This document shows positions 466 through 51,400 of a stretch of 64,000 bases of DNA, one piece after another. Source of the stretch: Auanema rhodensis (lineage: Eukaryota; Animalia; Nematoda); assembly GCA_964057225.1 (NCBI GenBank), contig OZ059895.1, positions 1,178,001 through 1,242,000 on the forward strand, written 5' to 3'. The number at the start of each line of letters is the position of its first letter. The first letter of the stretch is position 1. The position numbers were made by a program, and so were the translations under genes. Below the pieces are notes generated by a model. The model saw only the letters and a list, made by a program, of their open reading frames with translations. It searched no databases and was not told where the DNA came from.

Positions 466-472
466 GGAAGCA

Positions 473-500: not shown

Positions 501-583
501 ACACTAATGCATCATTTTTCAAACGATCATAACTAATTTTTGTATTAAGCGTTTCTCAATGTAGTATAGTGCATTCGATGCGG

Positions 584-634: not shown

Positions 635-651
635 GCACCGAGATATCAACT

Positions 652-673
652 GATATAAGTTCACACTTATATC
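652..673. repeat. 9-bp perfect inverted repeat with 4-nt loop, present in each monomer (representative copy)
   Basis: GATATAAGT-tcac-ACTTATATC. Confidence 0.92.
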
Positions 674-23600: not shown

Positions 23601-26600
23601 AATTTTTCGAAAAAATTTTTGTCAAAATGTTTTTGGAAGCAATGTTGAGTGTACATGGAAACTCAACATACACTAATGCATCATTTTTCAAACGATCATA
23701 ACTAATTTTTGTATTAAGCGTTTCTCAATGTAGTATAGTGCATTCGATGCGGATTTTTAAGCTGCGTCGATCTGTGTTATCAGATTTGCGCTAGCTTAAA
23801 AATGCACCGAGATATCAACTGATATAAGTTCACACTTATATCCTCGATTTTCACCCTGAAGAATTAATTTTTTCGTTGAATAACATTGTCCATCGTCTTT
23901 GCCTCGAAAAAAGGAATCTAAAAACATCTACTTTTTGCTAAATTATTTTGAAATTTTTCGAAAAAATTTTTGTCAAAATGTTTTTGGAAGCAATGTTGAG
24001 TGTACATGGAAACTCAACATACACTAATGCATCATTTTTCAAACGATCATAACTAATTCTTGTATTAAGCGTTTCTCAATGTAGTATAGTGCATTCGATG
24101 CGGATTTTTAAGCTGCGTCGATCTGTGTTATCAGATTTGCGCTAGCTTAAAAATGCACCGAGATATCAACTGATATAAGTTCACACTTATATCCTCGATT
24201 TTCACCCTGAAGAATTAATTTTTTCGTTGAATAACATTGTCCATCGTCTTTGCCTTGAAAAAAGGAATCTAAAAACATCTACTTTTTGCTAAATTATTTT
24301 GAAATTTTTCGAAAAAATTTTTGTCAAAATGTTTTTGGAAGCAATGTTGAGTGTACATGGAAACTCAACATACACTAATGCATCATTTTTCAAACGATCA
24401 TAACTAATTTTTGTATTAAGGGTTTCTCAATGTAGTATAGTGCATTCGATGCGGTATTTTAAGCTGCGTCGATCTGTGTTATCAGATTTGCGCTAGCTTA
24501 AAAATGCACCGATATATCAACTGATATAAGTTCACACTTATATCCTCGATTTTCACCCTGAAGAAATAATTTTTTCGTTGAATAACATTGTCCATCGTCT
24601 TTGCCTTGAAAAAAGGAATCTAAAAACATCTACTTTTTGCTAAATTATTTTGAAATTTTTCGAAAAAATTTTTGTCAAAATGTTTTTGGAAGCAATGTTG
24701 AGTGTACATGGAAACTCAACATACACTAATGCATCATTTTTCAAACGATCATAACTAATTCTTGTATTAAGCGTTTCTCAATGTAGTATAGTGCATTCGA
24801 TGCGGATTTTTAAGCTGCGTCGATCTGTGTTATCAGATTTGCGCTAGCTTAAAAATGCACCGAGATATCAACTGATATAAGTTCACACTTATATCCTCGA
24901 TTTTCACCCTGAAGAATTAATTTTTTCGTTGAATAACATTGTCCATCGTCTTTGCCTTGAAAAAAGGAATCTAAAAACATCTACTTTTTGCTAAATTATT
25001 TTGAAATTTTTCGAAAAAATTTTTGTCAAAATGTTTTTGGAAGCAATGTTGAGTGTACATGGAAACTCAACATACACTAATGCATCATTTTTCAAACGAT
25101 CATAACTAATTTTTGTATTAAGCGTTTCTCAATGTAGTATAGTGCATTCGATGCGGATTTTTAAGCTGCGTCGATCTGTGTTATCAGATTTGCGCTAGCT
25201 TAAAAATGCACCGAGATATCAACTGATATAAGTTCACACTTATATCCTCGATTTTCACCCTGAAGAATTAATTTTTTCGTTGAATAACATTGTCCATCGT
25301 CTTTGCCTTGAAAAAGGGAATCTAAAAACATCTACTTTTTGCTAAATTATTTTGAAATTTTTCGAAAAAATTTTTGTCAAAATGTTTTTGGAAGCAATGT
25401 TGAGTGTACATGGAAACTCAACATACACTAATGCATCATTTTTCAAACGATCATAACTAATTTTTGTATTAAGCGTTTCTCAATGTAGTATAGTGCATTC
25501 GATGCGGATTTTTAAGCTGCGTCGATCTGTGTTATCAGATTTGCGCTAGCTTAAAAATGCACCGAGATATCAACTGATATAAGTTCACACATATATCCTC
25601 GATTTTCACCCTGAAGAATTAATTTTTTCGTTGAATAACATTGTCCATCGTCTTTGCCTCGAAAAAAGGAATCTAAAAACATCTACTTTTTGCTAAATTA
25701 TTTTGAAATTTTTCGAAAAAATTTTTGTCAAAATGTTTTTGGAAGCAATGTTGAGTGTACATGGAAACTCAACATACACTAATGCATCATTTTTCAAACG
25801 ATCATAACTAATTTTTGTATTAAGCGTTTCTCAATGTAGTATAGTGCATTCGATGCGGATTTTTAAGCTGCGTCGATCTGTGTTATCAGATTTGCGCTAG
25901 CTTAAAAATGCACCGAGATATCAACTGATATAAGTTCACACTTATATCCTCGATTTTCACCCTGAAGAATTAATTTTTTCGTTGAATAACCTTGTCCATC
26001 GTCTTTGCCTTGAAAAAAGGAATCTAAAAACATCTACTTTTTGCTAAATTATTTTGAAATTTTTCGAAAAAATTTTTGTCAAAATGTTTTTGGAAGCAAT
26101 GTTGAGTGTACATGGAAACTCAACATACACTAATGCATCATTTTTCAAACGATCATAACTAATTTTTGTATTAAGCGTTTCTCAATGTAGTATAGTGCAT
26201 TCGATGCGGATTTTTAAGCTGCGTCGATCTGTGTTATCAGATTTGCGCTAGCTTAAAAATGCACCGAGATATCAACTGATATAAGTTCACACTTATATCC
26301 TCGATTTTCACCCTGAAGAATTAATTTTTTCGTTGAATAACATTGTCCATCGTCTTTGCCTCGAAAAAAGGAATCTAAAAACATCTACTTTTTGCTAAAT
26401 TATTTTGAAATTTTTCGAAAAAATTTTTGTCAAAATGTTTTTGGAAGCAATGTTGAGTGTACATGGAAACTCAACATACACTAATGCATCATTTTTCAAA
26501 CGATCATAACTAATTCTTGTATTAAGCGTTTCTCAATGTAGTATAGTGCATTCGATGCGGATTTTTAAGCTGCGTCGATCTGTGTTATCAGATTTGCGCT

Positions 26601-28425
26601 AGCTTAAAAATGCACCGAGATATCAACTGATATAAGTTCACACTTATATCCTCGATTTTCACCCTGAAGAATTAATTTTTTCGTTGAATAACATTGTCCA
26701 TCGTCTTTGCCTTGAAAAAAGGAATCTAAAAACATCTACTTTTTGCTAAATTATTTTGAAATTTTTCGAAAAAATTTTTGTCAAAATGTTTTTGGAAGCA
26801 ATGTTGAGTGTACATGGAAACTCAACATACACTAATGCATCATTTTTCAAACGATCATAACTAATTTTTGTATTAAGCGTTTCTCAATGTAGTATAGTGC
26901 ATTCGATGCGGTATTTTAAGCTGCGTCGATCTGTGTTATCAGATTTGCGCTAGCTTAAAAATGCACCGATATATCAACTGATATAAGTTCACACTTATAT
27001 CCTCGATTTTCACCCTGAAGAAATAATTTTTTCGTTGAATAACATTGTCCATCGTCTTTGCCTTGAAAAAAGGAATCTAAAAACATCTACTTTTTGCTAA
27101 ATTATTTTGAAATTTTTCGAAAAAATTTTTGTCAAAATGTTTTTGGAAGCAATGTTGAGTGTACATGGAAACTCAACATACACTAATGCATCATTTTTCA
27201 AACGATCATAACTAATTCTTGTATTAAGCGTTTCTCAATGTAGTATAGTGCATTCGATGCGGATTTTTAAGCTGCGTCGATCTGTGTTATCAGATTTGCG
27301 CTAGCTTAAAAATGCACCGAGATATCAACTGATATAAGTTCACACTTATATCCTCGATTTTCACCCTGAAGAATTAATTTTTTCGTTGAATAACATTGTC
27401 CATCGTCTTTGCCTTGAAAAAAGGAATCTAAAAACATCTACTTTTTGCTAAATTATTTTGAAATTTTTCGAAAAAATTTTTGTCAAAATGTTTTTGGAAG
27501 CAATGTTGAGTGTACATGGAAACTCAACATACACTAATGCATCATTTTTTCAAACGATCATAACTAATTTTTGTATTAAGCGTTTCTCAATGTAGTATAG
27601 TGCATTCGATGCGGATTTTTAAGCTGCGTCGATCTGTGTTATCAGATTTGCGCTAGCTTAAAAATGCACCGAGATATCAACTGATATAAGTTCACACTTA
27701 TATCCTCGATTTTCACCCTGAAGAATTAATTTTTTCGTTGAATAACATTGTCCATCGTCTTTGCCTTAAAAAAAGGAATCTAAAAACATCTACTTTTTGC
27801 TAAATTATTTTGAAATTTTTCGAAAAAATTTTTGTCAAAATGTTTTTGGAAGCAATGTTGAGTGTACATGGAAACTCAACATACACTAATGCATCATTTT
27901 TCAAACGATCATAACTAATTTTTGTATTAAGCGTTTCTCAATGTAGTATAGTGCATTCGATGCGGATTTTTAAGCTGCGTCGATCTGTGTTATCAGATTT
28001 GCGCTAGCTTAAAAATGCACCGAGATATCAACTTATATAAGTTCACACTTATATCCTCGATTTTCACCCTAAAGAATTAATTTTTTCGTTGAATAACATT
28101 GTCCATCGTCTTTGCCTTGAAAAAAGGAATCCAAAAACATTTACTTTTTGCTAAATTATATTGAAATTTTTCGAAAAAATTTTTGTCAAAATGTTTTTGG
28201 AAGCAATGTTGAGTGTACATGGAAACTCAACATACACTAATGCATCATTTTTCAAACGATCATAACTAATTCTTGTATTAAGCGTTTCTCAATGTAGTAT
28301 AGTGCATTCGATGCGGATTTTTAAGCTGCGTCGATCTGTGTTATCAGATTTGCGCTAGCTTAAAAATGCACCGAGATATCAACTGATATAAGTTCACACT
28401 TATATCCTCGATTTTCACCCTGAAG
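14600..28425 (+). repeat. Nested 6-, 7- and 21-monomer higher-order duplications
   Basis: 6-mer (2107 bp): TTCAATGC ~16372/~18479 and CCCTAAAG 18240/20347. 7-mer (2457 bp): AAAGGG 22859/25316 and GGTAT ~21998/24455/26912. 21-mer (7374 bp): GTAATA 14604/21978 and AAAGGG 15485/22859. Confidence 0.85.
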
Positions 28426-28445
28426 CTTAAAAATACACATCGATT
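28416..28445. other. Left strand-switch junction (convergent, forward to reverse)
   Basis: ...CACCCTGA[AG]CTTAAAAATACACATCG...: forward ends at monomer position 342, reverse starts at 244, with AG shared at 28424-28425. The join creates AAGCTT (HindIII) at 28423-28428, which is absent from the consensus monomer. Confidence 0.96.
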
Positions 28446-31400
28446 GCACTATACTACATTGAGAAACGCTTAATACAAAAATTAGTTATGATCGTTTGAA
28501 AAATGATGCATTAGTGTATGTTGAGTTTCCATGTACACTCAACATTGCTTCCAAAAACATTTTGACAAAAATTTTTTCGAAAAATTTCAGAATAATTTAG
28601 CAAAAAGTAGATGTTTTTAGATTCCTTTTTTCAAGGCAAAGACGATGGACAATGTTATTCAACGAAAAAATTAATTCTTCAGGATGAAAATCGAGGATAT
28701 AAGTGTGAACTTATATCAGTTGATATCTCGGTGCATTTTTAAGCTAGCTCAAATCTGATAACACAGATCGACGCAGCTTAAAAATCCGCATCGAATGCAC
28801 TATACTACATTGAGAAACGCTTAATACAAAAATTAGTTATGATCGTTTGAAAAATGATGCATTAGTGTATGTTGAGTTTCCATGTACACTCAACATTGCT
28901 TCCAAAAACATTTTGACAAAAATTTTTTCGAAAAATTTCAGAATAATTTAGCAAAAAGTAGATGTTTTTAGATTCCTTTTTTCAAGGCAAAGACGATGGA
29001 CAATGTTATTCAACGAAAAAATTAATTCTTCAGGGTGAAAATCGAGGATATAAGTGTGAACTTATATCAGTTGATATCTCGGTGCATTTTTAAGCTAGAG
29101 CAAATCTGATAACACAGAACGACGCAGCTTAAAAATCCGCATCGAATGCACTATACTACATTGAGAAACGCTTAATACAAAAATTAGTTATGATCGTTTG
29201 AAAAATGATGCATTAGTGTATGTTGAGTTTCCATGTACACTCAACATTGCTTCCAAAAACATTTTGACAAAAATTTTTTCGAAAAATTTCTAAATAATTT
29301 AGCAAAAAGTAGATGTTTTTAGATTCCTTTTTTCAAGGCAAAGACGATGGACAATGTTATTCAACGAAAAACTTAATTCTTCAGGGTGAAAATCGAGGAT
29401 ATAATTGTGAACTTATATCAGTTGATATCTCGGTGCATTTTTAAGCTAGCGCAAATCTGATAACACAGATCGACGCAGCTTAAAAATACACATCGATTGC
29501 ACTATACTACATTGAGAAACGCTTAATACAAAAATTAGTTATGATCGTTTGAAAAATGATGCATTAGTGTATGTTGAGTTTCCATGTACACTCAACATTG
29601 CTTCCAAAAACATTTTGACAAAAATTTTTTCGAAAAATTTCAGAATAATTTAGCAAAAAGTAGATGTTTTTAGATTCCTTTTTTCAAGGCAAAGACGATG
29701 GACAATGTTATTCAACGAAAAAATTAATTCTTCAGGGTGAAAATCGAGGATATAAGTGTGAACTTATATCAGTTGATATCTCGGTGCATTTTTAAGCTAG
29801 CGCAAATCTGATAACACAGAACGACGCAGCTTAAAAATCCGCATCGAATGCACTATACTACATTGAGAAACGCTTAATACAAAAATTAGTTATGATCGTT
29901 TGAAAAATGATGCATTAGTGTATGATGAGTTTCCATGTACACTCAACATTGCTTCCAAAAACATTTTGACAAAAATTTTTTCGAAAAATTTCAAAATAAT
30001 TTAGCAAAAAGTAGATGTTTTTAGATTCTTTTTTTCAAGGCAAAGACGATGGACAATGTTATTCAACGAAAAAATTAATTCTTCAGGGTGAAAATCGAGG
30101 ATATAAGTGTGAACTTATATCAGTTGATATCTCGGTGCATTTTTAAGCTAGCTCAAATCTGATAACACAGATCGACGCAGCTTAAAAATCCGCATCGAAT
30201 GCACTATACTACATTGAGAAACGCTTAATACAAAAATTAGTTATGATCGTTTGAAAAATGATGCATTAGTGTATGTTGAGTTTCCATGTACACTCAACAT
30301 TGCTTCCAAAAACATTTTGACAAAAATTTTTTCGAAAAATTTCAGAATAATTTAGCAAAAAGTAGATGTTTTTAGATTCCTTTTTTCAAGGCAAAGACGA
30401 TGGACAATGTTATTCAACGAAAAAATTAATTCTTCAGGGTGAAAATCGAGGATATAAGTGTGAACTTATATCAGTTGATATCTCGGTGCATTTTTAAGCT
30501 AGCGCAAATCTGATAACACAGAACGACGCAGCTTAAAAATCCGCATCGAATGCACTATACTACATTGAGAAACGCTTAATACAAAAATTAGTTATGATCG
30601 TTTGAAAAATGATGCATTAGTGTATGTTGAGTTTCCATGTACACTCAACATTGCTTCCAAAAACATTTTGACAAAAATTTTTTCGAAAAATTTCTAAATA
30701 ATTTAGCAAAAAGTAGATGTTTTTAGATTCCTTTTTTCAAGGCAAAGACGATGGACAATGTTATTCAACGAAAAACTTAATTCTTCAGGGTGAAAATCGA
30801 GGATATAATTGTGAACTTATATCAGTTGATATCTCGGTGCATTTTTAAGCTAGCGCAAATCTGATAACACAGATCGACGCAGCTTAAAAATACACATCGA
30901 TTGCACTATACTACATTGAGAAACGCTTAATACAAAAATTAGTTATGATCGTTTGAAAAATGATGCATTAGTGTATGTTGAGTTTCCATGTACACTCAAC
31001 ATTGCTTCCAAAAACATTTTGACAAAAATTTTTTCGAAAAATTTCAGAATAATTTAGCAAAAAGTAGATGTTTTTAGATTCTTTTTTTCAAAGCAAAGAC
31101 GATGGACATTGTTATTCAACGAAAAAATTAATTCTTCAGGGTGAAAATCGAGGATATAAGTGTGAACTTATATCAGTTGATATCTCGGTGCATTTTTAAG
31201 CTAGCGCAAATTTGATAACACAGATCGACGCAGCTTAAAAATCCGCATCGAATGCACTATACTACATTGAGAAACGCTTAATACAAAAATTAGTTATGAT
31301 CGTTTGAAAAATGATGCATTAGTGTATGTTGAGTTTCCATGTACACTCAACATTGCTTCCAAAAACATTTTGACAAAAATTTTTTCGAAAAATTTCAGAA

Positions 31401-34400
31401 TAATTTAGCAAAAAGTAGATGTTTTCAGATTCCTTTTTTCAAGGTAAAGACGATGGACAATGTTATTCAACGAAAAAATTAATTCTTCAGGGTGAAAATC
31501 GAGGATATAAGTGTGAACTTATATCAGTTGATATCTCGGTGCATTTTTAAGCTAGCTCAAATCTGATAACACAGATCGACGCAGCTTAAAAATCCGCATC
31601 GAATGCACTATACAACATTGAGAAACGCTTAATACAAAAATTAGTTATGATCGTTTGAAAAATGATGCATTAGTGTATGTTGAGTTTCCATGTACACTCA
31701 ACATTGCTTCCAAAAACATTTTGACAAAAATTTTTTCGAAAAATTTCAGAATAATTTAGCAAAAAGTAGATGTTTTTAGATTCCTTTTTTCAAGGTAAAG
31801 ACGATGGACAATGTTATTCAACGAAAAAATTAATTCTTCAGGGTGAAAATCGAGGATATAAGTGTGAACTTATATCAGTTGATATCTCGGTGCATTTTTA
31901 AGCTAGCGCAAATTTGATAACACAGATCGACGCAGCTTAAAAATCCGCATCGAATGCACTATACTACATTGAGAAACGCTTAAAACAAAAATTAGTTATG
32001 ATCGTTTGAAAAATGATGCATTAGTGTATGTTGAGTTTCCATGTACACTCAACATTGCTTCCAAAAACATTTTGACAAAAATTTTTTCGAAAAATTTCAG
32101 AATAATTTAGCAAAAAGTAGATGTTTTTAGATTCCTTTTTTCAAGGTAAAGACGATGGACAATGTTATTCAACGAAAAAATTAATTCTTCAGGGTGAAAA
32201 TCGAGGATATAAGTGTGAACTTATATCAGTTGATATCTCGGTGCATTTTTAAGCTAGCTCAAATCTGATAACACAGATCGACCCAGCTTAAAAATCCGCA
32301 TCGAATGCACTATACTACATTGAGAAACGCTTAATACAAAAATTAGTTATGATCGTTTGAAAAATGATGCATTAGTGTATGTTGAGTTTCCATGTACACT
32401 CAACATTGCTTCCAAAAACATTTTGACAAAAATTTTTTCGAAAAATTTCAAAATAATTTAGCAAAAAGTAGATGTTTTTAGATTCTTTTTTTCAAAGCAA
32501 AGACGATGGACATTGTTATTCAACGAAAAAATTAATTCTTCAGGGTGAAAATCGAGGATATAAGTGTGAACTTATATCAGTTGATATCTCGGTGCATTTT
32601 TAAGCTAGCGCAAATTTGATAACACAGATCGACGCAGCTTAAAAATCCGCATCGAATGCACTATACTACATTGAGAAACGCTTAAAACAAAAATTAGTTA
32701 TGATCGTTTGAAAAATGATGCATTAGTGTATGTTGAGTTTCCATGTACACTCAACATTGCTTCCAAAAACATTTTGACAAAAATTTTTTCGAAAAATTTC
32801 AGAATAATTTAGCAAAAAGTAGATGTTTTTAGATTCCTTTTTTCAAGGTAAAGACGATGGACAATGTTATTCAACGAAAAAATTAATTCTTCAGGGTGAA
32901 AATCGAGGATATAAGTGTGAACTTATATCAGTTGATATCTCGGTGCATTTTTAAGCTAGCTCAAATCTGATAACACAGATCGACCCAGCTTAAAAATCCG
33001 CATCGAATGCACTATACTACATTGAGAAACGCTTAATACAAAAATTAGTTATGATCGTTTGAAAAATGATGCATTAGTGTATGTTGAGTTTCCATGTACA
33101 CTCAACATTGCTTCCAAAAACATTTTGACAAAAATTTTTTCGAAAAATTTCAAAATAATTTAGCAAAAAGTAGATGTTTTTAGATTCTTTTTTTCAAAGC
33201 AAAGACGATGGACATTGTTATTCAACGAAAAAATTAATTCTTCAGGGTGAAAATCGAGGATATAAGTGTGAACTTATATCAGTTGATATCTCGGTGCATT
33301 TTTAAGCTAGCGCAAATCTGATAACACAGATCGACGCAGCTTAAAAATCCGCATCGAATGCACTATACTACATTGAGAAACGCTTAATACAAAAATTAGT
33401 TATGATCGTTTGAAAAATGATGCATTAGTGTATGTTGAGTTTCCATGTACACTCAACATTGCTTCCAAAAACATTTTGACAAAAATTTTTTCGAAAAATT
33501 TCAAAATAATTTAGCAAAAAGTAGATGTTTTTAGATTCCCTTTTTCAAGGCAAAGACGATGGACAATGTTATTCAACGAAAAAATTAATTCTTCAGGGTG
33601 AAAATCGAGGATATAAGTGTGAACTTATATCAGTTGATATCTCGGTGCATTTTTAAGCTAGCGCAAATCTGATAACACAGATCGACGCAGCTTAAAAATC
33701 CGCATCGAATGCACTATACTACATTGAGAAACGCTTAATACAAAAATTAGTTATGATCGTTTGAAAAATGATGCATTAGTGTATGTTGAGTTTCCATGTA
33801 CACTCAACATTGCTTCCAAAAACATTTTGACAAAAATTTTTTCGAAAAATTTCAAAATAATTTAGCAAAAAGTAGATGTTTTTAGATTCCTTTTTTCAAG
33901 GCAAAGACGATGGACAATGTTATTCAACGAAAAAATTAATTCTTCAGGGTGAAAATCGAGGATATAAGTGTGAACTTATATCAGTTGATATCTCGGTGCA
34001 TTTTTAAGCTAGCGCAAATCTGATAACACAGATCGACGCAGCTTAAAAATCCGCATCGAATGCACTATACTACATTGAGAAACGCTTAATACAAGAATTA
34101 GTTATGATCGTTTGAAAAATGATGCATTAGTGTATGTTGAGTTTCCATGTACACTCAACATTGCTTCCAAAAACATTTTGACAAAAATTTTTTCGAAAAA
34201 TTTCAAAATAATTTAGCAAAAAGTAGATGTTTTTAGATTCCTTTTTTCAAGGCAAAGACGATGGACAATGTTATTCAACGAAAAAATTATTTCTTCAGGG
34301 TGAAAATCGAGGATATAAGTGTGAACTTATATCAGTTGATATATCGGTGCATTTTTAAGCTAGCGCAAATCTGATAACACAGATCGACGCAGCTTAAAAT

Positions 34401-37400
34401 ACCGCATCGAATGCACTATATTACATTGAGAAACGCTTAATACAAAAATTAGTTATGATCGTTTGAAAAATGATGCATTAGTGTATGTTGAGTTTCCATG
34501 TACACTCAACATTGCTTCCAAAAACATTTTGACAAAAATTTTTTCGAAAAATTTCAAAATAATTTAGCAAAAAGTAGATGTTTTTAGATTCCTTTTTTCA
34601 AGGCAAAGACGATGGACAATGTTATTCAACGAAAAAATTAATTCTTCAGGGTGAAAATCGAGGATATAAGTGTGAACTTATATCAGTTGATATCTCGGTG
34701 CATTTTTAAGCTAGCGCAAATCTGATAACACAGATCGACGCAGCTTAAAAATCCGCATCGAATGCACTATACTACATTGAGAAACGCTTAATACAAAAAT
34801 TAGTTATGATCGTTTGAAAAAATGATGCATTAGTGTATGTTGAGTTTCCATGTACACTCAACATTGCTTCCAAAAACATTTTGACAAAAATTTTTTCGAA
34901 AAATTTCAAAATAATTTAGCAAAAAGTAGATGTTTTTGGATTCCTTTTTTCAAGGCAAAGACGATGGACAATGTTATTCAACGAAAAAATTAATTCTTTA
35001 GGGTGAAAATCGAGGATATAAGTGTGAACTTATATAAGTTGATATATCGGTGCATTTTTAAGCTAGCGCAAATCTGATAACACAGATCGACGCAGCTTAA
35101 AATACCGCATCGAATGCACTATACTACATTGAGAAACGCTTAATACAAAAATTAGTTATGATCGTTTGAAAAATGATGCATTAGTGTATGTTGAGTTTCC
35201 ATGTACACTCAACATTGCTTCCAAAAACATTTTGACAAAAATTTTTTCGAAAAATTTCAAAATAATTTAGCAAAAAGTAGATGTTTTTAGATTCCTTTTT
35301 CCAAGGCAAAGACGATGGACAATGTTATTCAACGAAAAAATTAATTCTTCAGGGTGAAAATCGAGGATATAAGTGTGAACTTATATCAGTTGATATCTCG
35401 GTGCATTTTTAAGCTAGCGCAAATCTGATAACACAGATCGACGCAGCTTAAAAATCCGCATCAAATGCACTATACTACATTGAGAAACGCTTAATACAAA
35501 AATTAGTTATGATCGTTTGAAAAATGATGCATTAGTGTATGTTGAGTTTCCATGTACACTCAACATTGCTTCCAAAAACATTTTGACAAAAATTTTTTCG
35601 AAAAATTTCAAAATAATTTAGCAAAAAGTAGATGTTTTTGGATTCCTTTTTTCAAGGCAAAGACGATGGACAATGTTATTCAACAAAAAAATTAATTCTT
35701 CAGGGTGAAAATCGAGGATATAAGTGTGAACTTATATCAGTTGATATCTCGGTGCATTTTTAAGCTAGCGCAAATCTGATAACACAGATCGACGCAGCTT
35801 AAAAATCCGCATCGAATGCACTATACTACATTGAGAAACGCTTAATACAAGAATTAGTTATGATCGTTTGAAAAATGATGCATTAGTGTATGTTGAGTTT
35901 CCATGTACACTCAACATTGCTTCCAAAAACATTTTGACAAAAATTTTTTCGAAAAATTTCAATATAATTTAGCAAAAAGTAAATGTTTTTGGATTCCTTT
36001 TTTCAAGGCAAAGACGATGGACAATGTTATTCAACGAAAAAATTAATTCTTTAGGGTGAAAATCGAGGATATAAGTGTGAACTTATATAAGTTGATATCT
36101 CGGTGCATTTTTAAGCTAGCGCAAATCTGATAACACAGATCGACGCAGCTTAAAAATCCGCATCGAATGCACTATACTACATTGAGAAACGCTTAATACA
36201 AAAATTAGTTATGATCGTTTGAAAAATGATGCATTAGTGTATGTTGAGTTTCCATGTACACTCAACATTGCTTCCAAAAACATTTTGACAAAAATTTTTT
36301 CGAAAAATTTCAAAATAATTTAGCAAAAAGTAGATGTTTTTAGATTCCTTTTTTCAAGGCAAAGACGATGGACAATGTTATTCAACGAAAAAATTAATTC
36401 TTCAGGGTGAAAATCGAGGATATAAGTGTGAACTTATATCAGTTGATATCTCGGTGCATTTTTAAGCTAGCGCAAATCTGATAACACAGATCGACGCAGC
36501 TTAAAAATCCGCATTGAATGCACTATACTACATTGAGAAACGCTTAATACAAAAATTAGTTATGATCGTTTGAAAAAATGATGCATTAGTGTATGTTGAG
36601 TTTCCATGTACACTCAACATTGCTTCCAAAAACATTTTGACAAAAATTTTTTCGAAAAATTTCAAAATAATTTAGCAAAAAGTAGATGTTTTTAGATTCC
36701 TTTTTTCAAGGCAAAGACGATGGACAATGTTATTCAACGAAAAAATTAATTCTTCAGGGTGAAAATCGAGGATATAAGTGTGAACTTATATCAGTTGATA
36801 TCTCGGTGCATTTTTAAGCTAGCGCAAATCTGATAACACAGATCGACGCAGCTTAAAAATCCGCATCGAATGCACTATACTACATTGAGAAACGCTTAAT
36901 ACAAGAATTAGTTATGATCGTTTGAAAAATGATGCATTAGTGTATGTTGAGTTTCCATGTACACTCAACATTGCTTCCAAAAACATTTTGACAAAAATTT
37001 TTTCGAAAAATTTCAAAATAATTTAGCAAAAAGTAGATGTTTTTAGATTCCTTTTTTCAAGGCAAAGACGATGGACAATGTTATTCAACGAAAAAATTAT
37101 TTCTTCAGGGTGAAAATCGAGGATATAAGTGTGAACTTATATCAGTTGATATATCGGTGCATTTTTAAGCTAGCGCAAATCTGATAACACAGATCGACGC
37201 AGCTTAAAATACCGCATCGAATGCACTATACTACATTGAGAAACGCTTAATACAAAAATTAGTTATGATCGTTTGAAAAATGATGCATTAGTGTATGTTG
37301 AGTTTCCATGTACACTCAACATTGCTTCCAAAAACATTTTGACAAAAATTTTTTCGAAAAATTTCAAAATAATTTAGCAAAAAGTAGATGTTTTTAGATT

Positions 37401-40400
37401 CCTTTTTTCAAGGCAAAGACGATGGACAATGTTATTCAACGAAAAAATTAATTCTTCAGGGTGAAAATCGAGGATATAAGTGTGAACTTATATCAGTTGA
37501 TATCTCGGTGCATTTTTAAGCTAGCGCAAATCTGATAACACAGATCGACGCAGCTTAAAAATCCGCATCGAATGCACTATACTACATTGAGAAACGCTTA
37601 ATACAAGAATTAGTTATGATCGTTTGAAAAATGATGCATTAGTGTATGTTGAGTTTCCATGTACACTCAACATTGCTTCCAAAAACATTTTGACAAAAAT
37701 TTTTTCGAAAAATTTCAAAATAATTTAGCAAAAAGTAGATGTTTTTAGATTCCTTTTTTCGAGGCAAAGACGATGGACAATGTTATTCAACGAAAAAATT
37801 AATTCTTCAGGGTGAAAATCGAGGATATAAGTGTGAACTTATATCAGTTGATATCTCGGTGCATTTTTAAGCTAGCGCAAATCTGATAACACAGATCGAC
37901 GCAGCTTAAAAATCCGCATCGAATGCACTATACTACATTGAGAAACGCTTAATACAAAAATTAGTTATGATCGTTAGAAAAATGATGCATTAGTGTATGT
38001 TGAGTTTCCATGTACACTCAACATTGCTTCCAAAAACATTTTGACAAAAATTTTTTCGAAAAATTTCAAAATAATTTAGCAAAAAGTAGATGTTTTTAGA
38101 TTTCTTTTTTCAAGGCAAAGACGATGGACAATGTTATTCAACGAAAAAATTAATTCTTCAGGGTGAAAATCGAGGATATAAGTGTGAACTTATATCAGTT
38201 GATATCTCGGTGCATTTTTAAGCTAGCGCAAATCTGATAACACAGATCGACGCAGCTTAAAAATCCGCATCGAATGCACTATACTACATTGAGAAACGCT
38301 TAATACAAAAATTAGTTATGATCGTTTGAAAAATGATGCATTAGTGTATGTTGAGTTTCCATGTACACTCAACATTGCTTCCAAAAACATTTTGACAAAA
38401 ATTTTTTCGAAAAATTTCAAAATAATTTAGCAAAAAGTAGATGTTTTTAGATTCCTTTTTTCGAGGCAAAGACGATGGACAATGTTATTCAACGAAAAAA
38501 TTAATTCTTCAGGGTGAAAATCGAGGATATAAGTGTGAACTTATATCAGTTGATATCTCGGTGCATTTTTAAGCTAGCGCAAATCTGATAACACAGATCG
38601 ACGCAGCTTAAAAATCCGCATCGAATGCACTATACTACATTGAGAAACGCTTAATACAAAAATTAGTTATGATCGTTTGAAAAATGATGCATTAGTGTAT
38701 GTTGAGTTTCCATGTACACTCAACATTGCTTCCAAAAACATTTTGACAAAAATTTTTTCGAAAAATTTCAAAATAATTTAGCAAAAAGTAGATGTTTTTA
38801 GATTTCCTTTTTCAAGGCAAAGACGATGGACAATGTTATTCAACGAAAAAATTAATTCTTCAGGGTGAAAATCGAGGATATAAGTGTGAACTTATATCAG
38901 TTGATATCTCGGTGCATTTTTAAGCTAGCGCAAATCTGATAACACAGATCGACGCAGCTTAAAAATCCGCATCGAATGCACTATACTACATTGAGAAACG
39001 CTTAATACAAAAATTAGTTATGATCGTTTGAAAAATGATGCATTAGTGTATGTTGAGTTTCCATGTACACTCAACATTGCTTCCAAAAACATTTTGACAA
39101 AAATTTTTTCGAAAAATTTCAAAATAATTTAGCAAAAAGTAGATGTTTTTAGATTCCTTTTTTCAAGGCAAAGACGATGGACAATGTTATTCAACGAAAA
39201 AATTAATTCTTCAGGGTGAAAATCGAGGATATAAGTGTGAACTTATATCAGTTGATATCTCGGTGCATTTTTAAGCTAGCGCAAATCTGATAACACAGAT
39301 CGACGCAGCTTAAAAATCCGCATCGAATGCACTATACTACATTGAGAAACGCTTAATACAAGAATTAGTTATGATCGTTTGAAAAATGATGCATTAGTGT
39401 ATGTTGAGTTTCCATGTACACTCAACATTGCTTCCAAAAACATTTTGACAAAAATTTTTTCGAAAAATTTCAAAATAATTTAGCAAAAAGTAGATGTTTT
39501 TAGATTCCTTTTTTCAAGGCAAAGACGATGGACAATGTTATTCAACGAAAAAATTATTTCTTCAGGGTGAAAATCGAGGATATAAGTGTGAACTTATATC
39601 AGTTGATATCTCGGTGCATTTTTAAGCTAGCGCAAATCTGATAACACAGATCGACGCAGCTTAAAAATCCGCGTCGAATGCACTATATTACATTGAGAAA
39701 CGCTTAATACAAGAATTAGTTATGATCGTTTGAAAAATGATGCATTAGTGTATGTTGAGTTTCCATGTACACTCAACATTGCTTCCAAAAACATTTTGAC
39801 AAAAATTTTTTCGAAAAATTTCAAAATAATTTAGCAAAAAGTAGATGTTTTTAGATTCCTTTTTTCAAGGCAAAGACGATGGACAATGTTATTCAACGAA
39901 AAAATTATTTCTTCAGGGTGAAAATCGAGGATATAAGTGTGAACTTATATCAGTTGATATATCGGTGCATTTTTAAGCTAGCGCAAATCTGATAACACAG
40001 ATCGACGCAGCTTAAAATACCGCATCGAATGCACTATATTACATTGAGAAACGCTTAATACAAAAATTAGTTATGATCGTTTGAAAAATGATGCATTAGT
40101 GTATGTTGAGTTTCCATGTACACTCAACATTGCTTCCAAAAACATTTTGACAAAAATTTTTTCGAAAAATTTCAAAATAATTTAGCAAAAAGTAGATGTT
40201 TTTAGATTCCTTTTTTCAAGGCAAAGACGATGGACAATGTTATTCAACGAAAAAATTAATTCTTCAGGGTGAAAATCGAGGATATAAGTGTGAACTTATA
40301 TCAGTTGATATCTCGGTGCATTTTTAAGCTAGCGCAAATCTGATAACACAAATCGACGCAGCTTAAAAATCCGCATCGAATGCACTATACTACATTGAGA

Positions 40401-43400
40401 AACGCTTAATACAAAAATTAGTTATGATCGTTTGAAAAATGATGCATTAGTGTATGTTGAGTTTCCATGTACACTCAACATTGCTTCCAAAAACATTTTG
40501 ACAAAAATTTTTTCGAAAAATTTCAAAATAATTTAGCAAAAAGTAGATGTTTTTGGATTCCTTTTTTCAAGGCAAAGACGATGGACAATGTTATTCAACG
40601 AAAAAATTAATTCTTCAGGGTGAAAATCGAGGATATAAGTGTGAACTTATATCAGTTGATATCTCGGTGCATTTTTAAGCTAGCGCAAATCTGATAACAC
40701 AGATCGACGCAGCTTAAAAATCCGCATCGAATGCACTATACTACATTGAGAAACGCTTAATACAAGAATTAGTTATGATCGTTTGAAAAATGATGCATTA
40801 GTGTATGTTGAGTTTCCATGTACACTCAACATTGCTTCCAAAAACATTTTGACAAAAATTTTTTCGAAAAATTTCAAAATAATTTAGCAAAAAGTAGATG
40901 TTTTTAGATTCCTTTTTTCAAGGCAAAGACGATGGACAATGTTATTCAACGAAAAAATTAATTCTTCAGGGTGAAAATCGAGGATATAAGTGTGAACTTA
41001 TATCAGTTGATATCTCGGTGCATTTTTAAGCTAGCGCAAATCTGATAACACAGATCGACGCAGCTTAAAAATCCGCATCGAATGCACTATACTACATTGA
41101 AAAACGCTTAATACAAAAATTAGTTATGATCGTTTGAAAAATGATGCATTAGTGTATGTTGAGTTTCCATGTACACTCAACATTGCTTCCAAAAACATTT
41201 TGACAAAAATTTTTTCGAAAAATTTCAAAATAATTTAGCAAAAAGTAGATGTTTTTAGATTCCTTTTTTCAAGGCAAAGACGATGGACAATGTTATTCAA
41301 CGAAAAAATTAATTCTTCAGGGTGAAAATCGAGGATATAAGTGTGAACTTATATCAGTTGATATCTCGGTGCATTTTTAAGCTAGCGCAAATCTGATAAC
41401 ACAGATCGACGCAGCTTAAAAATCCGCATCGAATGCACTATACTACATTGAGAAACGCTTAATACAAGAATTAGTTATGATCGTTTGAAAAATGATGCAT
41501 TAGTGTATGTTGAGTTTCCATGTACACTCAACATTGCTTCCAAAAACATTTTGACAAAATTTTTTTCGAAAAATTTCAAAATAATTTAGCAAAAAGTAGA
41601 TGTTTTTAGATTCCTTTTTTCAAGGCAAAGACGATGGACAATGTTATTCAACGAAAAAATTGATTCTTCAGGGTGAAAATCGAGGATATAAGTGTGAACT
41701 TATATCAGTTGATATCTCGGTGCATTTTTAAGCTAGCGCAAATCTGATAACACAGATCGACGCAGCTTAAAAATCCGCATCGAATGCACTATACTACATT
41801 GAAAAACGCTTAATACAAAAATTAGTTATGATCGTTTGAAAAATGATGCATTAGTGTATGTTGAGTTTCCATGTACACTCAACATTGCTTCCAAAAACAT
41901 TTTGACAAAAATTTTTTCGAAAAATTTCAAAATAATTTAGCAAAAAGTAGATGTTTTTAGATTCCTTTTTTCAAGGCAAAGACGATGGACAATGTTATTC
42001 AACGAAAAAATTAATTCTTCAGGGTGAAAATCGAGGATATAAGTGTGAACATATATCAGTTGATATCTCGGTGCATTTTTAAGCTAGCGCAAATCTGATA
42101 ACACAGATCGACGCAGCTTAAAAATCCGCATCGAATGCACTATACTACATCGAGAAACGCTTGATACAAAAATTAGTTATGATCGTTTGAAAAATGATGC
42201 ATTAGTGTATGTTGAGTTTCCATGTACACTCAACATTGCTTCCAAAAACATTTTGACAAAAATTTTTTCGAAAAATTTCAAAATAATTTAGCAAAAAGTA
42301 GATGTTTTTAGATTCCATTTTTCAAGGCAAAGACGATGGACGATGTTATTCAACAAAAAAATTAATTCTTCAGGGTGAAAATCGAGGATATAAGTGTGAA
42401 CTTATATCAGTTGATATCTCGGTGCATTTTTAAGCTGGCGCAAATCTGATAACACAGATCGACGCAGCTTAAAAATCCGCATCGAATGCACTATACTACA
42501 TTGAGAAACGCTTATTACACAATTTAGTTATGATTGTTTGAAAAATGATGCATTAGTGTATGTTGAGTTTCCATGTACACTCAACATTGCTTCCAAAAAC
42601 ATTTTGACAAAAATTTTTTCGAAAAATTTCAAAATAATTTAGCAAAAAGTAGATGTTTTTGGATTCCTTTTTTCAAGGCAAAGACGATGGACAATGTTAT
42701 TCAACGAAAAAATTAATTCTTCAGGGTGAAAATCGAGGATATAAGTGTAAACTTATATCAGTTGATATCTCGGTGCATTTTTAAGCTAGCGCAAATCTGA
42801 TAACACAGATCGACGCAGCTTAAAATACCGCATCGAATGCACTATACTACATGGAGAAACGCTTAATACAAAAATTAGTTATGATCGTTTGAAAAATGAT
42901 GCATTAGTGTATGTTGAGTTTCCATGTACACTCAACATTGCTTCCAAAAACATTTTGACAAAAATTTTTTCGAAAAATTTCAAAATAATTTAGCAAAAAG
43001 TAGATGTTTTTGGATTCCTTTTTTCAAGGCAAAGACGATGGACAATGTTATTCAACGAAAAAATTAATTCTTCAGGGTGAAAATCGAGGATATAAGTGTA
43101 AACTTATATCAGTTGATATCTCGGTGCATTTTTAAGCTAGCGCAAATCTGATAACACAGATCGACGCAGCTTAAAATACCGCATCGAATGCACTATACTA
43201 CATGGAGAAACGCTTAATACAAAAATTAGTTATGATCGTTTGAAAAATGATGCATTAGTGTATGTTGAGTTTCCATGTACACTCAACATTGCTTCCAAAA
43301 ACATTTTGACAAAAATTTTTTCGAAAAATTTCAAAATAATTTAGCAAAAAGTAGATGTTTTTAGATTCCTTTTTTCAAGGCAAAGACGATGGACAATGTT

Positions 43401-46400
43401 ATTCAACGAAAAAATTAATTCTTCAGGGTGAAAATCGAGGATATAAGTGTGAACATATATCAGTTGATATCTCGGTGCATTTTTAAGCTAGCGCAAATCT
43501 GATAACACAGATCGACGCAGCTTAAAAATCCGCATCGAATGCACTATACTACATCGAGAAACGCTTGATACAAAAATTAGTTATGATCGTTTGAAAAATG
43601 ATGCATTAGTGTATGTTGAGTTTCCATGTACACTCAACATTGCTTCCAAAAACATTTTGACAAAAATTTTTTCGAAAAATTTCAAAATAATTTAGCAAAA
43701 AGTAGATGTTTTTAGATTCCATTTTTCAAGGCAAAGACGATGGACGATGTTATTCAACAAAAAAATTAATTCTTCAGGGTGAAAATCGAGGATATAAGTG
43801 TGAACTTATATCAGTTGATATCTCGGTGCATTTTTAAGCTAGCGCAAATCTGATAACACAGATCGACGCAGCTTAAAAATCCGCATCGAATGCACTATAC
43901 TACATTGAGAAACGCTTATTACACAATTTAGTTATGATTGTTTGAAAAATGATGCATTAGTGTATGTTGAGTTTCCATGTACACTCAACATTGCTTCCAA
44001 AAACATTTTGACAAAAATTTTTTCGAAAAATTTCAAAATAATTTAGCAAAAAGTAGATGTTTTTGGATTCCTTTTTTCAAGGCAAAGACGATGGACAATG
44101 TTATTCAACGAAAAAATTAATTCTTCAGGGTGAAAATCGAGGATATAAGTGTAAACTTATATCAGTTGATATCTCGGTGCATTTTTAAGCTAGCGCAAAT
44201 CTGATAACACAGATCGACGCAGCTTAAAATACCGCATCGAATGCACTATACTACATGGAGAAACGCTTAATACAAAAATTAGTTATGATCGTTTGAAAAA
44301 TGATGCATTAGTGTATGTTGAGTTTCCATGTACACTCAACATTGCTTCCAAAAACATTTTGACAAAAATGTTTTCGAAAAATTTCAAAATAATTTAGCAA
44401 AAAGTAGATGTTTTTGGATTCCTTTTTTCAAGGCAAAGACGATGGACAATGTTATTCAACGAAAAAATTAATTCTTCAGGGTGAAAATCGAGGATATAAG
44501 TGTAAACTTATATCAGTTGATATCTCGGTGCATTTTTAAGCTAGCGCAAATCTGATAACACAGATCGACGCAGCTTAAAATACCGCATCGAATGCACTAT
44601 ACTACATGGAGAAACGCTTAATACAAAAATTAGTTATGATCGTTTGAAAAATGATGCATTAGTGTATGTTGAGTTTCCATGTACACTCAACATTGCTTCC
44701 AAAAACATTTTGACAAAAATTTTTTCGAAAAATTTCAAAATAATTTAGCAAAAAGTAGATGTTTTTAGATTCCTTTTTTCAAGGCAAAGACGATGGACAA
44801 GGTTATTCAACGAAAAAATTAATTCTTCAGGGTGAAAATCGAGGATATAAGTGTGAACTTATATCAGTTGATATCTCGGTGCATTTTTAAGCTAGCGCAA
44901 ATCTGATAACACATATCGACGCAGCTTAAAATACCGCATCGAATGCACTATACTACATGGAGAAACGCTTAATACAAAAATTAGTTATGATCGTTTGAAA
45001 AATGATGCATTAGTGTATGTTGAGTTTCCATGTACACTCAACATTGCTTCCAAAAACATTTTGACAAAAATGTTTTCGAAAAATTTCAAAATAATTTAGC
45101 AAAAAGTAGATGTTTTTGGATTCCTTTTTTCAAGGCAAAGACGATGGACAATGTTATTCAACGAAAAAATTAATTCTTCAGGGTGAAAATCGAGGATATA
45201 AGTGTAAACTTATATCAGTTGATATCTCGGTGCATTTTTAAGCTAGCGCAAATCTGATAACACAGATCGACGCAGCTTAAAATACCGCATCGAATGCACT
45301 ATACTACATGGAGAAACGCTTAATACAAAAATTAGTTATGATCGTTTGAAAAATGATGCATTAGTGTATGTTGAGTTTCCATGTACACTCAACATTGCTT
45401 CCAAAAACATTTTGACAAAAATTTTTTCGAAAAATTTCAAAATAATTTAGCAAAAAGTAGATGTTTTTAGATTCCTTTTTTCAAGGCAAAGACGATGGAC
45501 AAGGTTATTCAACGAAAAAATTAATTCTTCAGGGTGAAAATCGAGGATATAAGTGTGAACTTATATCAGTTGATATCTCGGTGCATTTTTAAGCTAGCGC
45601 AAATCTGATAACACAGATCGACGCAGCTTAAAAATCCGCATCGAATGCACTATACTACATTGAGAAACGCTTAATACAAAAATTAGTTATGATCGTTTGA
45701 AAAATGATGCATTAGTGTATGTTGAGTTTCCATGTACACTCAACATTGCTTCCAAAAACATTTTGACAAAAATTTTTTCGAAAAATTTCAAAATAATTTA
45801 GCAAAAAGTAGATGTTTTTAGATTCCTTTTTTCAAGGCAAAGACGATGGACAAGGTTATTCAACGAAAAAATTAATTCTTCAGGGTGAAAATCGAGGATA
45901 TAAGTGTGAACTTATATCAGTTGATATCTCGGTGCATTTTTAAGCTAGCGCAAATCTGATAACACAGATCGACGCAGCTTAAAAATCCGCATCGAATGCA
46001 CTATACTACATTGAGAAACGCTTAATACAAGAATTAGTTATGATCGTTTGAAAAATGATGCATTAGTGTATGTTGAGTTTCCATGTACACTCAACATTGC
46101 TTCCAAAAACATTTTAACAAAAATTTTTTCGAAAAATTTCAAAATAATTTAGCAAAAAGTAGATGTTTTTGGATTCCTTTTTTCAAGGCAAAGACGATGG
46201 ACAATGTTATTCAACGAAAAAATTAATTCTTCAGGGTGAAAATCGAGGATATAAGTGTGAACTTATATCAGTTGATATCTCGGTGCATTTTTAAGCTAGC
46301 GCAAATCTGATAACACAGATCGACGCAGCTTAAAAATCCGCATCGAATGCACTTTACTACATTGAGAAACGCTTAATACAAAAATTAGTTATGATCGTTT

Positions 46401-48469
46401 GAAAAATGATGCATTAGTGTATGTTGAGTTTCCATGTACACTCAACATTGCTTCCAAAAACATTTTGACAAAAATTTTTTCGAAAAATTTCAAAATAATT
46501 TAGCAAAAAGTAGATGTTTTTGGATTCCTTTTTTCAAGGCAAAGACGATGGACAATGTTATTCAACGAAAAAATTAATTCTTCAGGGTGAAAATCGAGGA
46601 TATAAGTGTGAACTTATATCAGTTGATATCTCGGTGCATTTTTAAGCTAGCGCAAATCTGATAACACAGATCGACGCAGCTTAAAAATCCGCATCGAATG
46701 CACTATACTACATTGAGAAACGCTTAATACAAAAATTAGTTATGATCGTTTGAAAAATGATGCATTAGTGTATGTTGAGTTTCCATGTACACTCAACATT
46801 GCTTCCAAAAACATTTTGACAAAAATTTTTTCGAAAAATTTCAAAATAATTTAGCAAAAAGTAGATGTTTTTAGATTCCTTTTTTCAAGGCAAAGACGAT
46901 GGACAATGTTATTCAACGAAAAAATTAATTCTTCAGGGTGAAAATCGAGGATATAAGTGTGAACTTATATCAGTTGATATCTCGGTGCATTTTTAAGCTA
47001 GCGCAAATCTGATAACACAGATCGACGCAGCTTAAAAATCCGCATCGAATGCACTATACTACATTGAGAAACGCTTAATACAAGAATTAGTTATGATCGT
47101 TTGAAAAATGATGCATTAGTGTATGTTGAGTTTCCATGTACACTCAACATTGCTTCCAAAAACATTTTGACAAAAATTTTTTCGAAAAATTTCAAAATAA
47201 TTTAGCAAAAACTAGATGTTTTTAGATTCCTTTTTTCAAGGCAAAGACGATGGACAATGTTATTCAACGAAAAAATTATTTCTTCAGGGTGAAAATCGAG
47301 GATATAAGTGTGAACTTATATCAGTTGATATATCGGTGCATTTTTAAGCTAGCGCAAATCTGATAACACAGATCGACGCAGCTTAAAATACCGCATCGAA
47401 TGCACTATACTACATTGAGAAACGCTTAATACAAAAATTAGTTATGATCGTTTGAAAAATGATGCATTAGTGTATGTTGAGTTTCCATGTACACTCAACA
47501 TTGCTTCCAAAAACATTTTGACAAAAATTTTTTCGAAAAATTTCAAAATAATTTAGCAAAAAGTAGATGTTTTTAGATTCCTTTTTTCAAGGCAAAGACG
47601 ATGGACAATGTTATTCAACGAAAAAATTAATTCTTCAGGGTGAAAATCGAGGATATAAGTGTGAACTTATATCAGTTGATATCTCGGTGCATTTTTAAGC
47701 TAGCGCAAATCTGATAACACAGATCGACGCAGCTTAAAAATCCGCATCGAATGCACTATACTACATTGAGAAACGCTTAATACAAAAATTAGTTATGATC
47801 GTTTGAAAAATGATGCATTAGTGTATGTTGAGTTTCCATGTACACTCAACATTGCTTCCAAAAACATTTTGACAAAAATTTTTTCGAAAAATTTCAAAAT
47901 AATTTAGCAAAAAGTAGATGTTTTTAGATTCCTTTTTTCAAGGCAAAGACGATGGACAATGTTATTCAACGAAAAAATTAATTCTTCAGGGTGAAAATCG
48001 AGGATATAAGTGTGAACTTATATCAGTTGATATCTCGGTGCATTTTTAAGCTAGCGCAAATCTGATAACACAGATCGACGCAGCTTAAAAATCCGCATCG
48101 AATGCACTATACTACATTGAGAAACGCTTAATACAAGAATTAGTTATGATCGTTTGAAAAATGATGCATTAGTGTATGTTGAGTTTCCATGTACACTCAA
48201 CATTGCTTCCAAAAACATTTTGACAAAAATTTTTTCGAAAAATTTCAAAATAATTTAGCAAAAAGTAGATGTTTTTAGATTCCTTTTTTCAAGGCAAAGA
48301 CGATGGACAATGTTATTCAACGAAAAAATTATTTCTTCAGGGTGAAAATCGAGGATATAAGTGTGAACTTATATCAGTTGATATATCGGTGCATTTTTAA
48401 GCTAGCGCAAATCTGATAACACAGATCGACGCAGCTTAAAATACCGCATCGAATGCACTATACTACATT
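28424..48469 (-). repeat. Satellite block R, reverse-complement orientation, ~57 monomers (20 kb)
   Basis: Reads GTTATTCAACGAAA..., the reverse complement of the monomer. AGCTTAAAA at 28424 and 48433 are 20009 bp apart = 57x351 + 2 (two +A insertions, ~34820 and ~36575). Confidence 0.98.
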
Positions 48470-48485
48470 CGAAAAAATTTTTGTC
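48449..48485. other. Right strand-switch junction (divergent, reverse to forward)
   Basis: ...CTATACTACA[TT]CGAAAAAATTTTTGTC...: reverse ends at monomer position 208, forward resumes at 87, with TT shared at 48468-48469. Confidence 0.96.
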
Positions 48486-51400
48486 AAAATGTTTTTGGAA
48501 GCAATGTTGAGTGTACATGGAAACTCAACATACACTAATGCATCATTTTTCAAACGATCATAACTAATTTTTGTATTAAGCGTTTCTCAATGTAGTATAG
48601 TGCATTCGATGCGGATTTTTAAGCTGCGTCGATCTGTGTTATCAGATTTGCGCTAGCTTAAAAATGCACCGATATATCAACTGATATAAGTTCACACTTA
48701 TATCCTCGATTTTCACCCTGAAGAAATAATTTTTTCGTTGAATAACATTGTCCATCGTCTTTGCCTTGAAAAAAGGAATCTAAAAACATCTACTTTTTGC
48801 TAAATTATTTTGAAATTTTTCGAAAAAATTTTTGTCAAAATGTTTTTGGAAGCAATGTTGAGTGTACATGGAAACTCAACATACACTAATGCATCATTTT
48901 TCAAACGATCATAACTAATTCTTGTATTAAGCGTTTCTCAATGTAGTATAGTGCATTCGATGCGGATTTTTAAGCTGCGTCGATCTGTGTTATCAGATTT
49001 GCGCTAGCTTAAAAATGCACCGAGATATCAACTGATATAAGTTCACACTTATATCCTCGATTTTCACCCTGAAGAATTAATTTTTTCGTTGAATAACATT
49101 GTCCATCGTCTTTGCCTTGAAAAAAGGAATCTAAAAACATCTACTTTTTGCTAAATTATTTTGAAATTTTTCGAAAAAATTTTTGTCAAAATGTTTTTGG
49201 AAGCAATGTTGAGTGTACATGGAAACTCAACATACACTAATGCATCATTTTTCAAACGATCATAACTAATTTTTGTATTAAGCGTTTCTCAATGTAGTAT
49301 AGTGCATTCGATGCGGATTTTTAAGCTGCGTCGATCTGTGTTATCAGATTTGCGCTAGCTTAAAAATGCACCGAGATATCAACTGATATAAGTTCACACT
49401 TATATCCTCGATTTTCACCCTGAAGAATTAATTTTTTCGTTGAATAACATTGTCCATCGTCTTTGCCTTGAAAAAAGGAATCTAAAAACATCTACTTTTT
49501 GCTAAATTATTTTGAAATTTTTCGAAAAAATTTTTGTCAAAATGTTTTTGGAAGCAATGTTGAGTGTACATGGAAACTCAACATACACTAATGCATCATT
49601 TTTCAAACGATCATAACTAATTTTTGTATTAAGCGTTTCTCAATGTAGTATAGTGCATTCGATGCGGATTTTTAAGCTGCGTCGATCTGTGTTATCAGAT
49701 TTGCGCTAGCTTAAAAATGCACCGATATATCAACTGATATAAGTTCACACTTATATCCTCGATTTTCACCCTGAAGAAATAATTTTTTCGTTGAATAACA
49801 TTGTCCATCGTCTTTGCCTTGAAAAAAGGAATCTAAAAACATCTACTTTTTGCTAAATTATTTTGAAATTTTTCGAAAAAATTTTTGTCAAAATGTTTTT
49901 GGAAGCAATGTTGAGTGTACATGGAAACTCAACATACACTAATGCATCATTTTTCAAACGATCATAACTAATTCTTGTATTAAGCGTTTCTCAATGTAGT
50001 ATAGTGCATTCGATGCGGATTTTTAAGCTGCGTCGATCTGTGTTATCAGATTTGCGCTAGCTTAAAAATGCACCGAGATATCAACTGATATAAGTTCACA
50101 CTTATATCCTCGATTTTCACCCTGAAGAATTAATTTTTTCGTTGAATAACATTGTCCATCGTCTTTGCCTTGAAAAAAGGAATCTAAAAACATCTACTTT
50201 TTGCTAAATTATTTTGAAATTTTTCGAAAAAATTTTTGTCAAAATGTTTTTGGAAGCAATGTTGAGTGTACATGGAAACTCAACATACACTAATGCATCA
50301 TTTTTCAAACGATCATAACTAATTTTTGTATTAAGCGTTTCTCAATGTAGTATAGTGCATTCGATGCGGATTTTTAAGCTGCGTCGATCTGTGTTATCAG
50401 ATTTGCGCTAGCTTAAAAATGCACCGAGATATCAACTGATATAAGTTCACACTTATATCCTCGATTTTCACCCTGAAGAATTAATTTTTTCGTTGAATAA
50501 CATTGTCCATCGTCTTTGCCTTGAAAAAAGGAATCTAAAAACATCTACTTTTTGCTAAATTATTTTGAAATTTTTCGAAAAAATTTTTGTCAAAATGTTT
50601 TTGGAAGCAATGTTGAGTGTACATGGAAACTCAACATACACTAATGCATCATTTTTCAAACGATCATAACTAATTTTTGTATTAAGCGTTTCTCAATGTA
50701 GTATAGTGCATTCGATGCGGTATTTTAAGCTGCGTCGATCTGTGTTATCAGATTTGCGCTAGCTTAAAAATGCACCGATATATCAACTGATATAAGTTCA
50801 CACTTATATCCTCGATTTTCACCCTGAAGAAATAATTTTTTCGTTGAATAACATTGTCCATCGTCTTTGCCTTGAAAAAAGGAATCTAAAAACATCTAGT
50901 TTTTGCTAAATTATTTTGAAATTTTTCGAAAAAATTTTTGTCAAAATGTTTTTGGAAGCAATGTTGAGTGTACATGGAAACTCAACATACACTAATGCAT
51001 CATTTTTCAAACGATCATAACTAATTCTTGTATTAAGCGTTTCTCAATGTAGTAAAGTGCATTCGATGCGGATTTTTAAGCTGCGTCGATCTGTGTTATC
51101 AGATTTGCGCTAGCTTAAAAATGCACCGAGATATCAACTGATATAAGTTCACACTTATATCCTCGATTTTCACCCTGAAGAATTAATTTTTTCGTTGAAT
51201 AACATTGTCCATCGTCTTTGCCTTGAAAAAAGGAATCTAAAAACATCTACTTTTTGCTAAATTATTTTGAAATTTTTCGAAAAAATTTTTGTCAAAATGT
51301 TTTTGGAAGCAATGTTGAGTGTACATGGAAACTCAACATACACTAATGCATCATTTTTCAAACGATCATAACTAATTTTTGTATTAAGCGTTTCTCAATG

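Follow-up and report, generated by a model that had tools for sequence, protein, structure and literature searches.

A reversed block in a 351-bp satellite array has the geometry of a fold-back inverted duplication at its right junction

The window analysed here, the whole 64-kb stretch of DNA, was made up of a single AT-rich tandem repeat with a 351-bp unit (31% GC), in which a reversed block lies between two forward arrays. Judging from the sequence, this block is probably an inverted duplication with one fold-back junction on its right and one long-range join on its left, a reading to which we give a probability of roughly 0.58. The block was regarded as an inserted inverted duplication because of its geometry and the order of its haplotypes, from which we infer the mechanism.

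The three arrays were a forward array at 1–28425 (F1; monomers 0–80), a reverse array at 28424–48469 (R), and a second forward array at 48468–64000 (F2; monomers 139–183), the end of which was cut by the window edge. The base skews switched sign together with the array orientation in F1, R, and F2. The window, which contained no N gaps, was split into 184 monomers by comparison with a consensus, and the question of haplotypes was answered by a variant matrix of these monomers, whose pairwise divergence was approximately 1.4–1.7% (about 98.5% alike). F1 was composed of haplotype domain A (1–14390) followed by domain B (14391–28425), the latter with a higher-order unit of about 15 monomers and tandem duplications inside. 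The unit length of 351 bp falls inside the range of 167–504 nt given for tandem-repeat units in the A. rhodense preprint (10.64898/2026.08.27.747507). None of the four published A. rhodense FISH probes matched the monomer (best, 16/28), a 25-mer from the monomer had no match in metagenome contigs, and a literature search on the 351-bp satellite found nothing relevant. The window contained no telomere repeats, and the surroundings of the left junction gave no hit to an Rfam RNA family.

At the left junction (28424–28425), which is tail-to-tail, monomer position 342 is joined to position 244 with a 2-bp microhomology (AG); at the right junction (48468–48469), which is head-to-head, position 208 is joined to position 87 with a 2-bp microhomology (TT). 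The right junction is a fold-back centre, and the left one is not a mirror centre. These breakpoints, named in the original prediction, are real and non-reciprocal in the assembled sequence. Microhomology of at least 2 bp is expected in 20% of random inverted joins on the monomer and is thus weak evidence alone. Non-reciprocal breakpoints alone are also compatible with an inversion accompanied by losses at the breakpoints, and the haplotypes must therefore decide. Stable folds at both junctions are a trivial outcome of any switch in a homogeneous satellite, and an orientation switch in a satellite that is 98.5% homogeneous is trivially an inverted repeat.

Fold-back geometry at the right junction was supported by the comparison of R with F2. 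R monomers 138–133 showed 3 differences from F2 monomers 142–147, the best of 116 positions (median, 23). The F2 monomers of this match begin at a distance of three monomers from the junction, and when the search was run in reverse, the match likewise ranked first of 53. The mirror arms had 0–2 differences per monomer over the first six monomers, and the exact arms measured 1,051 bp (47391–48441 and 48617–49667). As a whole, R monomers 120–138 (42008–48469, − strand) mirror F2, being collinear with monomers 142–148, 167–170, and 177–183 and skipping about 27 monomers; 19 R monomers thus stand opposite 45 F2 monomers in collinear arms of unequal length. The arms are separated by a spacer of 119 nt (48470–48588, + strand; monomer positions 89–207), and a hairpin formed here would have a 2-bp stem, which 20% of random joins reach, and a 119-nt loop. 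Between the innermost R monomer and its F2 partner, two neighbouring sites (234/235) differed. The match between R and F2 runs as far as monomer 183, which is truncated and closes the window, and the R monomers that follow the F2-matching part have variants that no other monomers of the window carry. Because the match stops exactly at the window end, an edge effect may account for what looks like a switch of donor at 42 kb.

In the variant matrix of the window, 25 variants were exclusive to F1 and R, 14 to R and F2, and 1 to F1 and F2. Within R, the F1-type variants were located at 28.4–42.0 kb and nearly all F2-type variants at 42.0–47.3 kb; this left/right segregation gave p<5e-5 by monomer permutation and p=0.043 by a stricter circular-shift test. 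The earlier claim that, in rare variants, the left part of R resembles F1 and the right part F2 was borne out by the 25 and 14 exclusive variants, respectively, and the sharing supports the view that R is a product of inverted copying that holds inverted copies of sequence from both flanks. The sole variant common to F1 and F2 and absent from R was 36A (27733–28083, 52945–53295, and 57508–57858), which sits in the penultimate F1 monomer, in line with a former adjacency of F1 and F2.

The left half of R is not one continuous copy of F1, because the domains follow each other as B then A when R is read, and as A then B when F1 is read. R monomers 81–88 (28424–31124, − strand; haplotype C) carried mainly private variants (224A, 231T, and 233T; 79A and 251T; 316A), and no donor for them was found within the window. 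The A-type monomers 89–94 (31125–33230, − strand) come after B in reading order and resemble F1 monomers 19–36 without being collinear with them, so that the monomers in 31.1–33.2 kb are F1-like in an order different from that of F1. R monomers 108–119 (37920–42007, − strand) comprised B-type monomers of greater divergence, along with a group in which 44A, 171T, 253T, 97A, and 346C were private; their donor was absent from the window and possibly lies just beyond 64000. In total, about 26 R monomers were without a donor in the window, which counts against the reading favoured here.

At the left junction, the mirror-copy test of a fold-back failed. The first 14 reversed monomers (R 81–94; 28424–33230) differed from their mirror partners by 6.07 differences each, which is the level of random F1–R pairs (5.67). 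The first reversed monomer carried foreign variants reaching as close as 11 nt to the junction, and the haplotype domains on the two sides of that junction are unrelated (variant similarity, 0.0). Of the two macro-palindromes that had been proposed to be centred on the junctions, the right one was confirmed as a mirror centre, with 1,051-bp exact arms in a mirror of unequal overall length, and the left one was unsupported (6.07 vs. 5.67 at random). The accompanying check, that R should be closer to the mirrored flank than to random monomers, gave the same division: it held on the right (3 differences vs. a median of 23) and failed for the first 14 monomers on the left.

Farther into R, a segment at 33216–37919 (− strand) was a 4,704-bp copy of F1 18480–23183 (+ strand; monomers 53–65) with one mismatch. 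This 4.7-kb inverted repeat consists of 3,299 bp and 1,404 bp of exact match on one diagonal with its centre at 28199.5, and no exact match in the window, direct or inverted, is longer than the 3,299-bp stretch. Between the arms lie 10,032 bp, and their centre is offset by 225 bp relative to the left junction, which is one monomer away from exact register; the chance of such centring by random placement was 4.3% (post hoc). The favoured model gives no account of this position, which counts against it. A flip of the spacer between the arms was rejected, since undoing it yields no mirror, as reasoned from the monomer variants. The inverted tract contains 1 event in 13.4 monomers and the R/F2 mirror about 7 in 17 (p=0.03–0.07); the tract looks somewhat younger than that mirror. 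As a tentative explanation, it may derive from arm-to-arm gene conversion younger than the fold-back, or the whole 20-kb block may be one repair product with at least five template switches. If conversion occurred, opposed subarrays would pair and homogenise each other like palindrome arms; if the block is one product, at least five template switches would have taken place among monomers on both sides of a break. This young, nearly centred inverted tract over an unrelated 10-kb spacer is the unusual detail of the locus and may record conversion between opposed arms.

The same tract bears on an alternative that is close to the original prediction and that we regard as unlikely, namely that R arose by a double fold-back, giving a full inverted triplication with mirror centres at both junctions, and was later eroded, with 10 kb at the left centre replaced or deleted and a secondary junction formed. 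The 3,299-bp inverted F1/R match centred 225 bp from the left junction (p=0.043) agrees with this history, and eroded palindromic junctions have been proposed as the usual end state of human inverted CNVs (10.1101/2023.09.19.558550). However, foreign variants come up to 11 nt from the left junction, 0 of the first 14 R monomers mirror F1, F1 has no copy of R at its end and lacks all 14 variants shared by R and F2, and the replacement would have to restore nearly exactly the length that was lost. An intact inverted triplication, which needs R in direct orientation on both flanks and two palindromic junctions, was rejected, as the end of F1 mismatches R.

An assembly artefact is improbable. Under this explanation, one or both junctions, or in-register joins within R, would come from a chimeric read or from a mis-join of near-identical reads, and the HiFi coverage of repeat regions is only about 29-fold if the genome is the A. 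rhodense assembly. Fold-back reads with a missed adapter give exact arms, whereas the arms here differ from the first monomer onwards and in copy number. Moreover, rare variants link R to both flanks, which would not be expected of a partner ligated at random from a multi-megabase array, no N gap is present, and comparable switches in Tribolium, the macro-dyad junctions, were confirmed in raw HiFi reads (PMC13081366).

Still less probable is a simple inversion with small breakpoint losses in an array that already carried a 20-kb direct macro-duplication. The end of F1 and the right end of R share haplotypes like neighbours (0.56–0.67), and non-reciprocal breakpoints are, by themselves, compatible with inversion plus deletions. 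Nevertheless, this history would require each of the two breaks to lie no more than three monomers from equivalent points of the macro-duplication. The right join, once restored, shows a similarity of 0.0, below 98% of ordinary boundaries, and R starts, at its right end, with a copy of the start of F2; this reading is largely refuted. The polarity of variants in R is the reverse of that predicted from a simple inversion of a locally homogenised array. Together with the copying of the first F2 monomers at the right end of R, this upheld the statement in the original prediction that the block is not a simple inversion. A balanced inversion was rejected on its non-reciprocal breakpoints (342|244 vs. 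208|87) and the restored right join (0.0), and an inversion by staggered breaks was rejected because the predicted duplicated pieces (208–342 and 87–244) carry different variants. A further reading, in which the block is a conserved inversion cassette that was amplified as in Tribolium macro-dyads and whose junctions spread as units and perhaps have a function, is highly improbable: a forward-reverse-forward satellite of tens of kilobases does resemble those macro-dyads, but each junction sequence occurs once in 64 kb, the left and right ones differ, and the junction monomers are ordinary, in contrast to the degenerate junction subunits of T. madens with thousands of copies (PMC13081366).

The flanks give an indication of the state before the event. 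The end of F1 and the start of F2 showed a haplotype sharing of 0.60–0.73, like ordinary neighbours (within-array median, about 0.6), and the left end of R shares no variant with either neighbour (0.0). For these reasons, R looks to have been inserted between F1 and F2, which would once have been contiguous or nearly so. Under such an insertion, the loss between F1 and F2 would amount to 95 bp plus whole monomers. A breakage-fusion-bridge-like origin, which had also been suggested, is disfavoured, as both flanks persist and look originally contiguous.

For the inverted duplication that we favour, the following course is proposed. Where F2 starts, a break or a stalled fork would leave a 3′ end that folds back on itself at a TT/AA inverted pair of 2 bp with a separation of 119 nt; alternatively, a leading strand would switch to the lagging template there. 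In either case, F2 would be copied onwards. In-register shifts between monomers, either of the new strand or by later unequal exchange or conversion, are proposed because the monomers are 98.5% alike; these would pass over parts of F2 and bring in 4.7 kb of F1, together with two domains that come from other places in the array. The far end of the new strand would then be joined to the end of F1 through the 2-bp AG/CT microhomology. The internal mosaic of R may have formed in the same event or later. The approximately 27 extra F2 monomers in the mirrored span and the differences at 234/235 count against this course in its simplest form, and several later or concurrent events are needed because of them.

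The structure belongs to known kinds, that is, foldback inversions, eroded inverted triplications, and satellite strand switches. Foldback-inversion GCRs in S. cerevisiae have a hairpin junction, consisting of a short stem and a loop, to which the right junction may correspond, and they share with the locus an inverted, duplicated arm as well as a further junction formed by homology or microhomology. Among the routes proposed for them is hairpin-primed synthesis that switches template, and those with loops longer than 15 nt are resolved by secondary homology- or microhomology-mediated joins (PMC7467729). In contrast to the yeast cases, the donor and acceptor here are one satellite, a switch made in register produces no junction and shows up only as a change of haplotype, the stem is only 2 bp, and the event is known from sequence and has no experimental origin.

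The forward-reverse-forward order is also a feature of ODIRA inverted triplications, and so is the interrupted inverted repeat of 2 bp, within 250 bp, on which the right junction falls; ODIRA junctions lie at inverted repeats of 2–14 bp, mostly 40–80 bp apart (PMC10766183). The 119-nt spacer exceeds that preferred distance, and unlike the flanks of an intact ODIRA triplication, F1 has no direct copy of R and none of the 14 variants shared by R and F2. In ODIRA derivatives, erosion of a palindromic junction would account for the left side observed here (10.1101/2023.09.19.558550). DUP-TRP/INV-DUP rearrangements resemble the locus in having two template switches, one junction with 1–9 bp of microhomology, and an inverted middle segment, and they require a junction in an inverted low-copy repeat (PMC11293582). 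This type was rejected, as neither junction lies in a pre-existing inverted low-copy repeat pair and both joins are out of register with 2-bp microhomology.

Among satellites, Tribolium macro-dyads consist of opposed multi-kilobase subarrays of one satellite, as here, but their inversion sites are conserved, present in thousands of copies, and located in (peri)centromeres (PMC13081366, PMC12581902), whereas the two junctions of the window are different and young, and each is present once in the 64 kb. In human satellites, more than 200 strand-switch breakpoints in HSat3 and beta satellite and a 1.7-Mb inversion in the chr1 HOR array have been described (10.1101/2021.07.12.452052). These resemble R as inverted blocks within homogeneous arrays; they were catalogued as inversions, while the monomer haplotypes here indicate duplication. 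Satellite strand switches are usually catalogued in this way without a mechanism, and the haplotypes of this locus point to a reverse block that is a copy-number gain by fold-back. Inverted duplication would thus contribute, beside unequal crossing-over, to the growth and mixing of satellite arrays. The value of the locus is that of a data point for a genome-wide survey and not of a new system.

Several smaller features of the satellite were also observed. The monomer contains four dyads, at positions 81–99, 123–150, 234–284, and 302–323 (for example, 431–449, 473–500, 584–634, and 652–673 in the window). Breakpoints 244 and 87–89, that is, 2 of 4, lie at inner stem edges of these dyads (p=0.04–0.2 depending on tolerance, post hoc), and a tie between the breakpoints and hairpin edges was discounted as support. 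R starts with AGCTTAAAAAT, the same letters as forward monomer positions 274–284, and a two-step switch through the dyad at 234–284 is therefore possible.

Exact direct matches of up to 2,218 bp were present in 1–28425 and 48470–64000 at offsets of 3, 5, 6, 7, 11, 13, and 21 monomers. The F1 and F2 ranges contained many young in-register tandem duplications of 2–21 monomers, about one per ten monomers, and copy-number change in this satellite outpaces point mutation. Monomers 52 (18253–18603) and 130 (45518–45868) were recombinant: their 5′ variants are of one type and their 3′ part is of another, which marks them as crossover points of in-register duplications. The first monomer (1–350) carried 42T and 196C, otherwise found in domain D, and 251T, otherwise found in domain C, hinting at C- and D-like domains upstream of the window.
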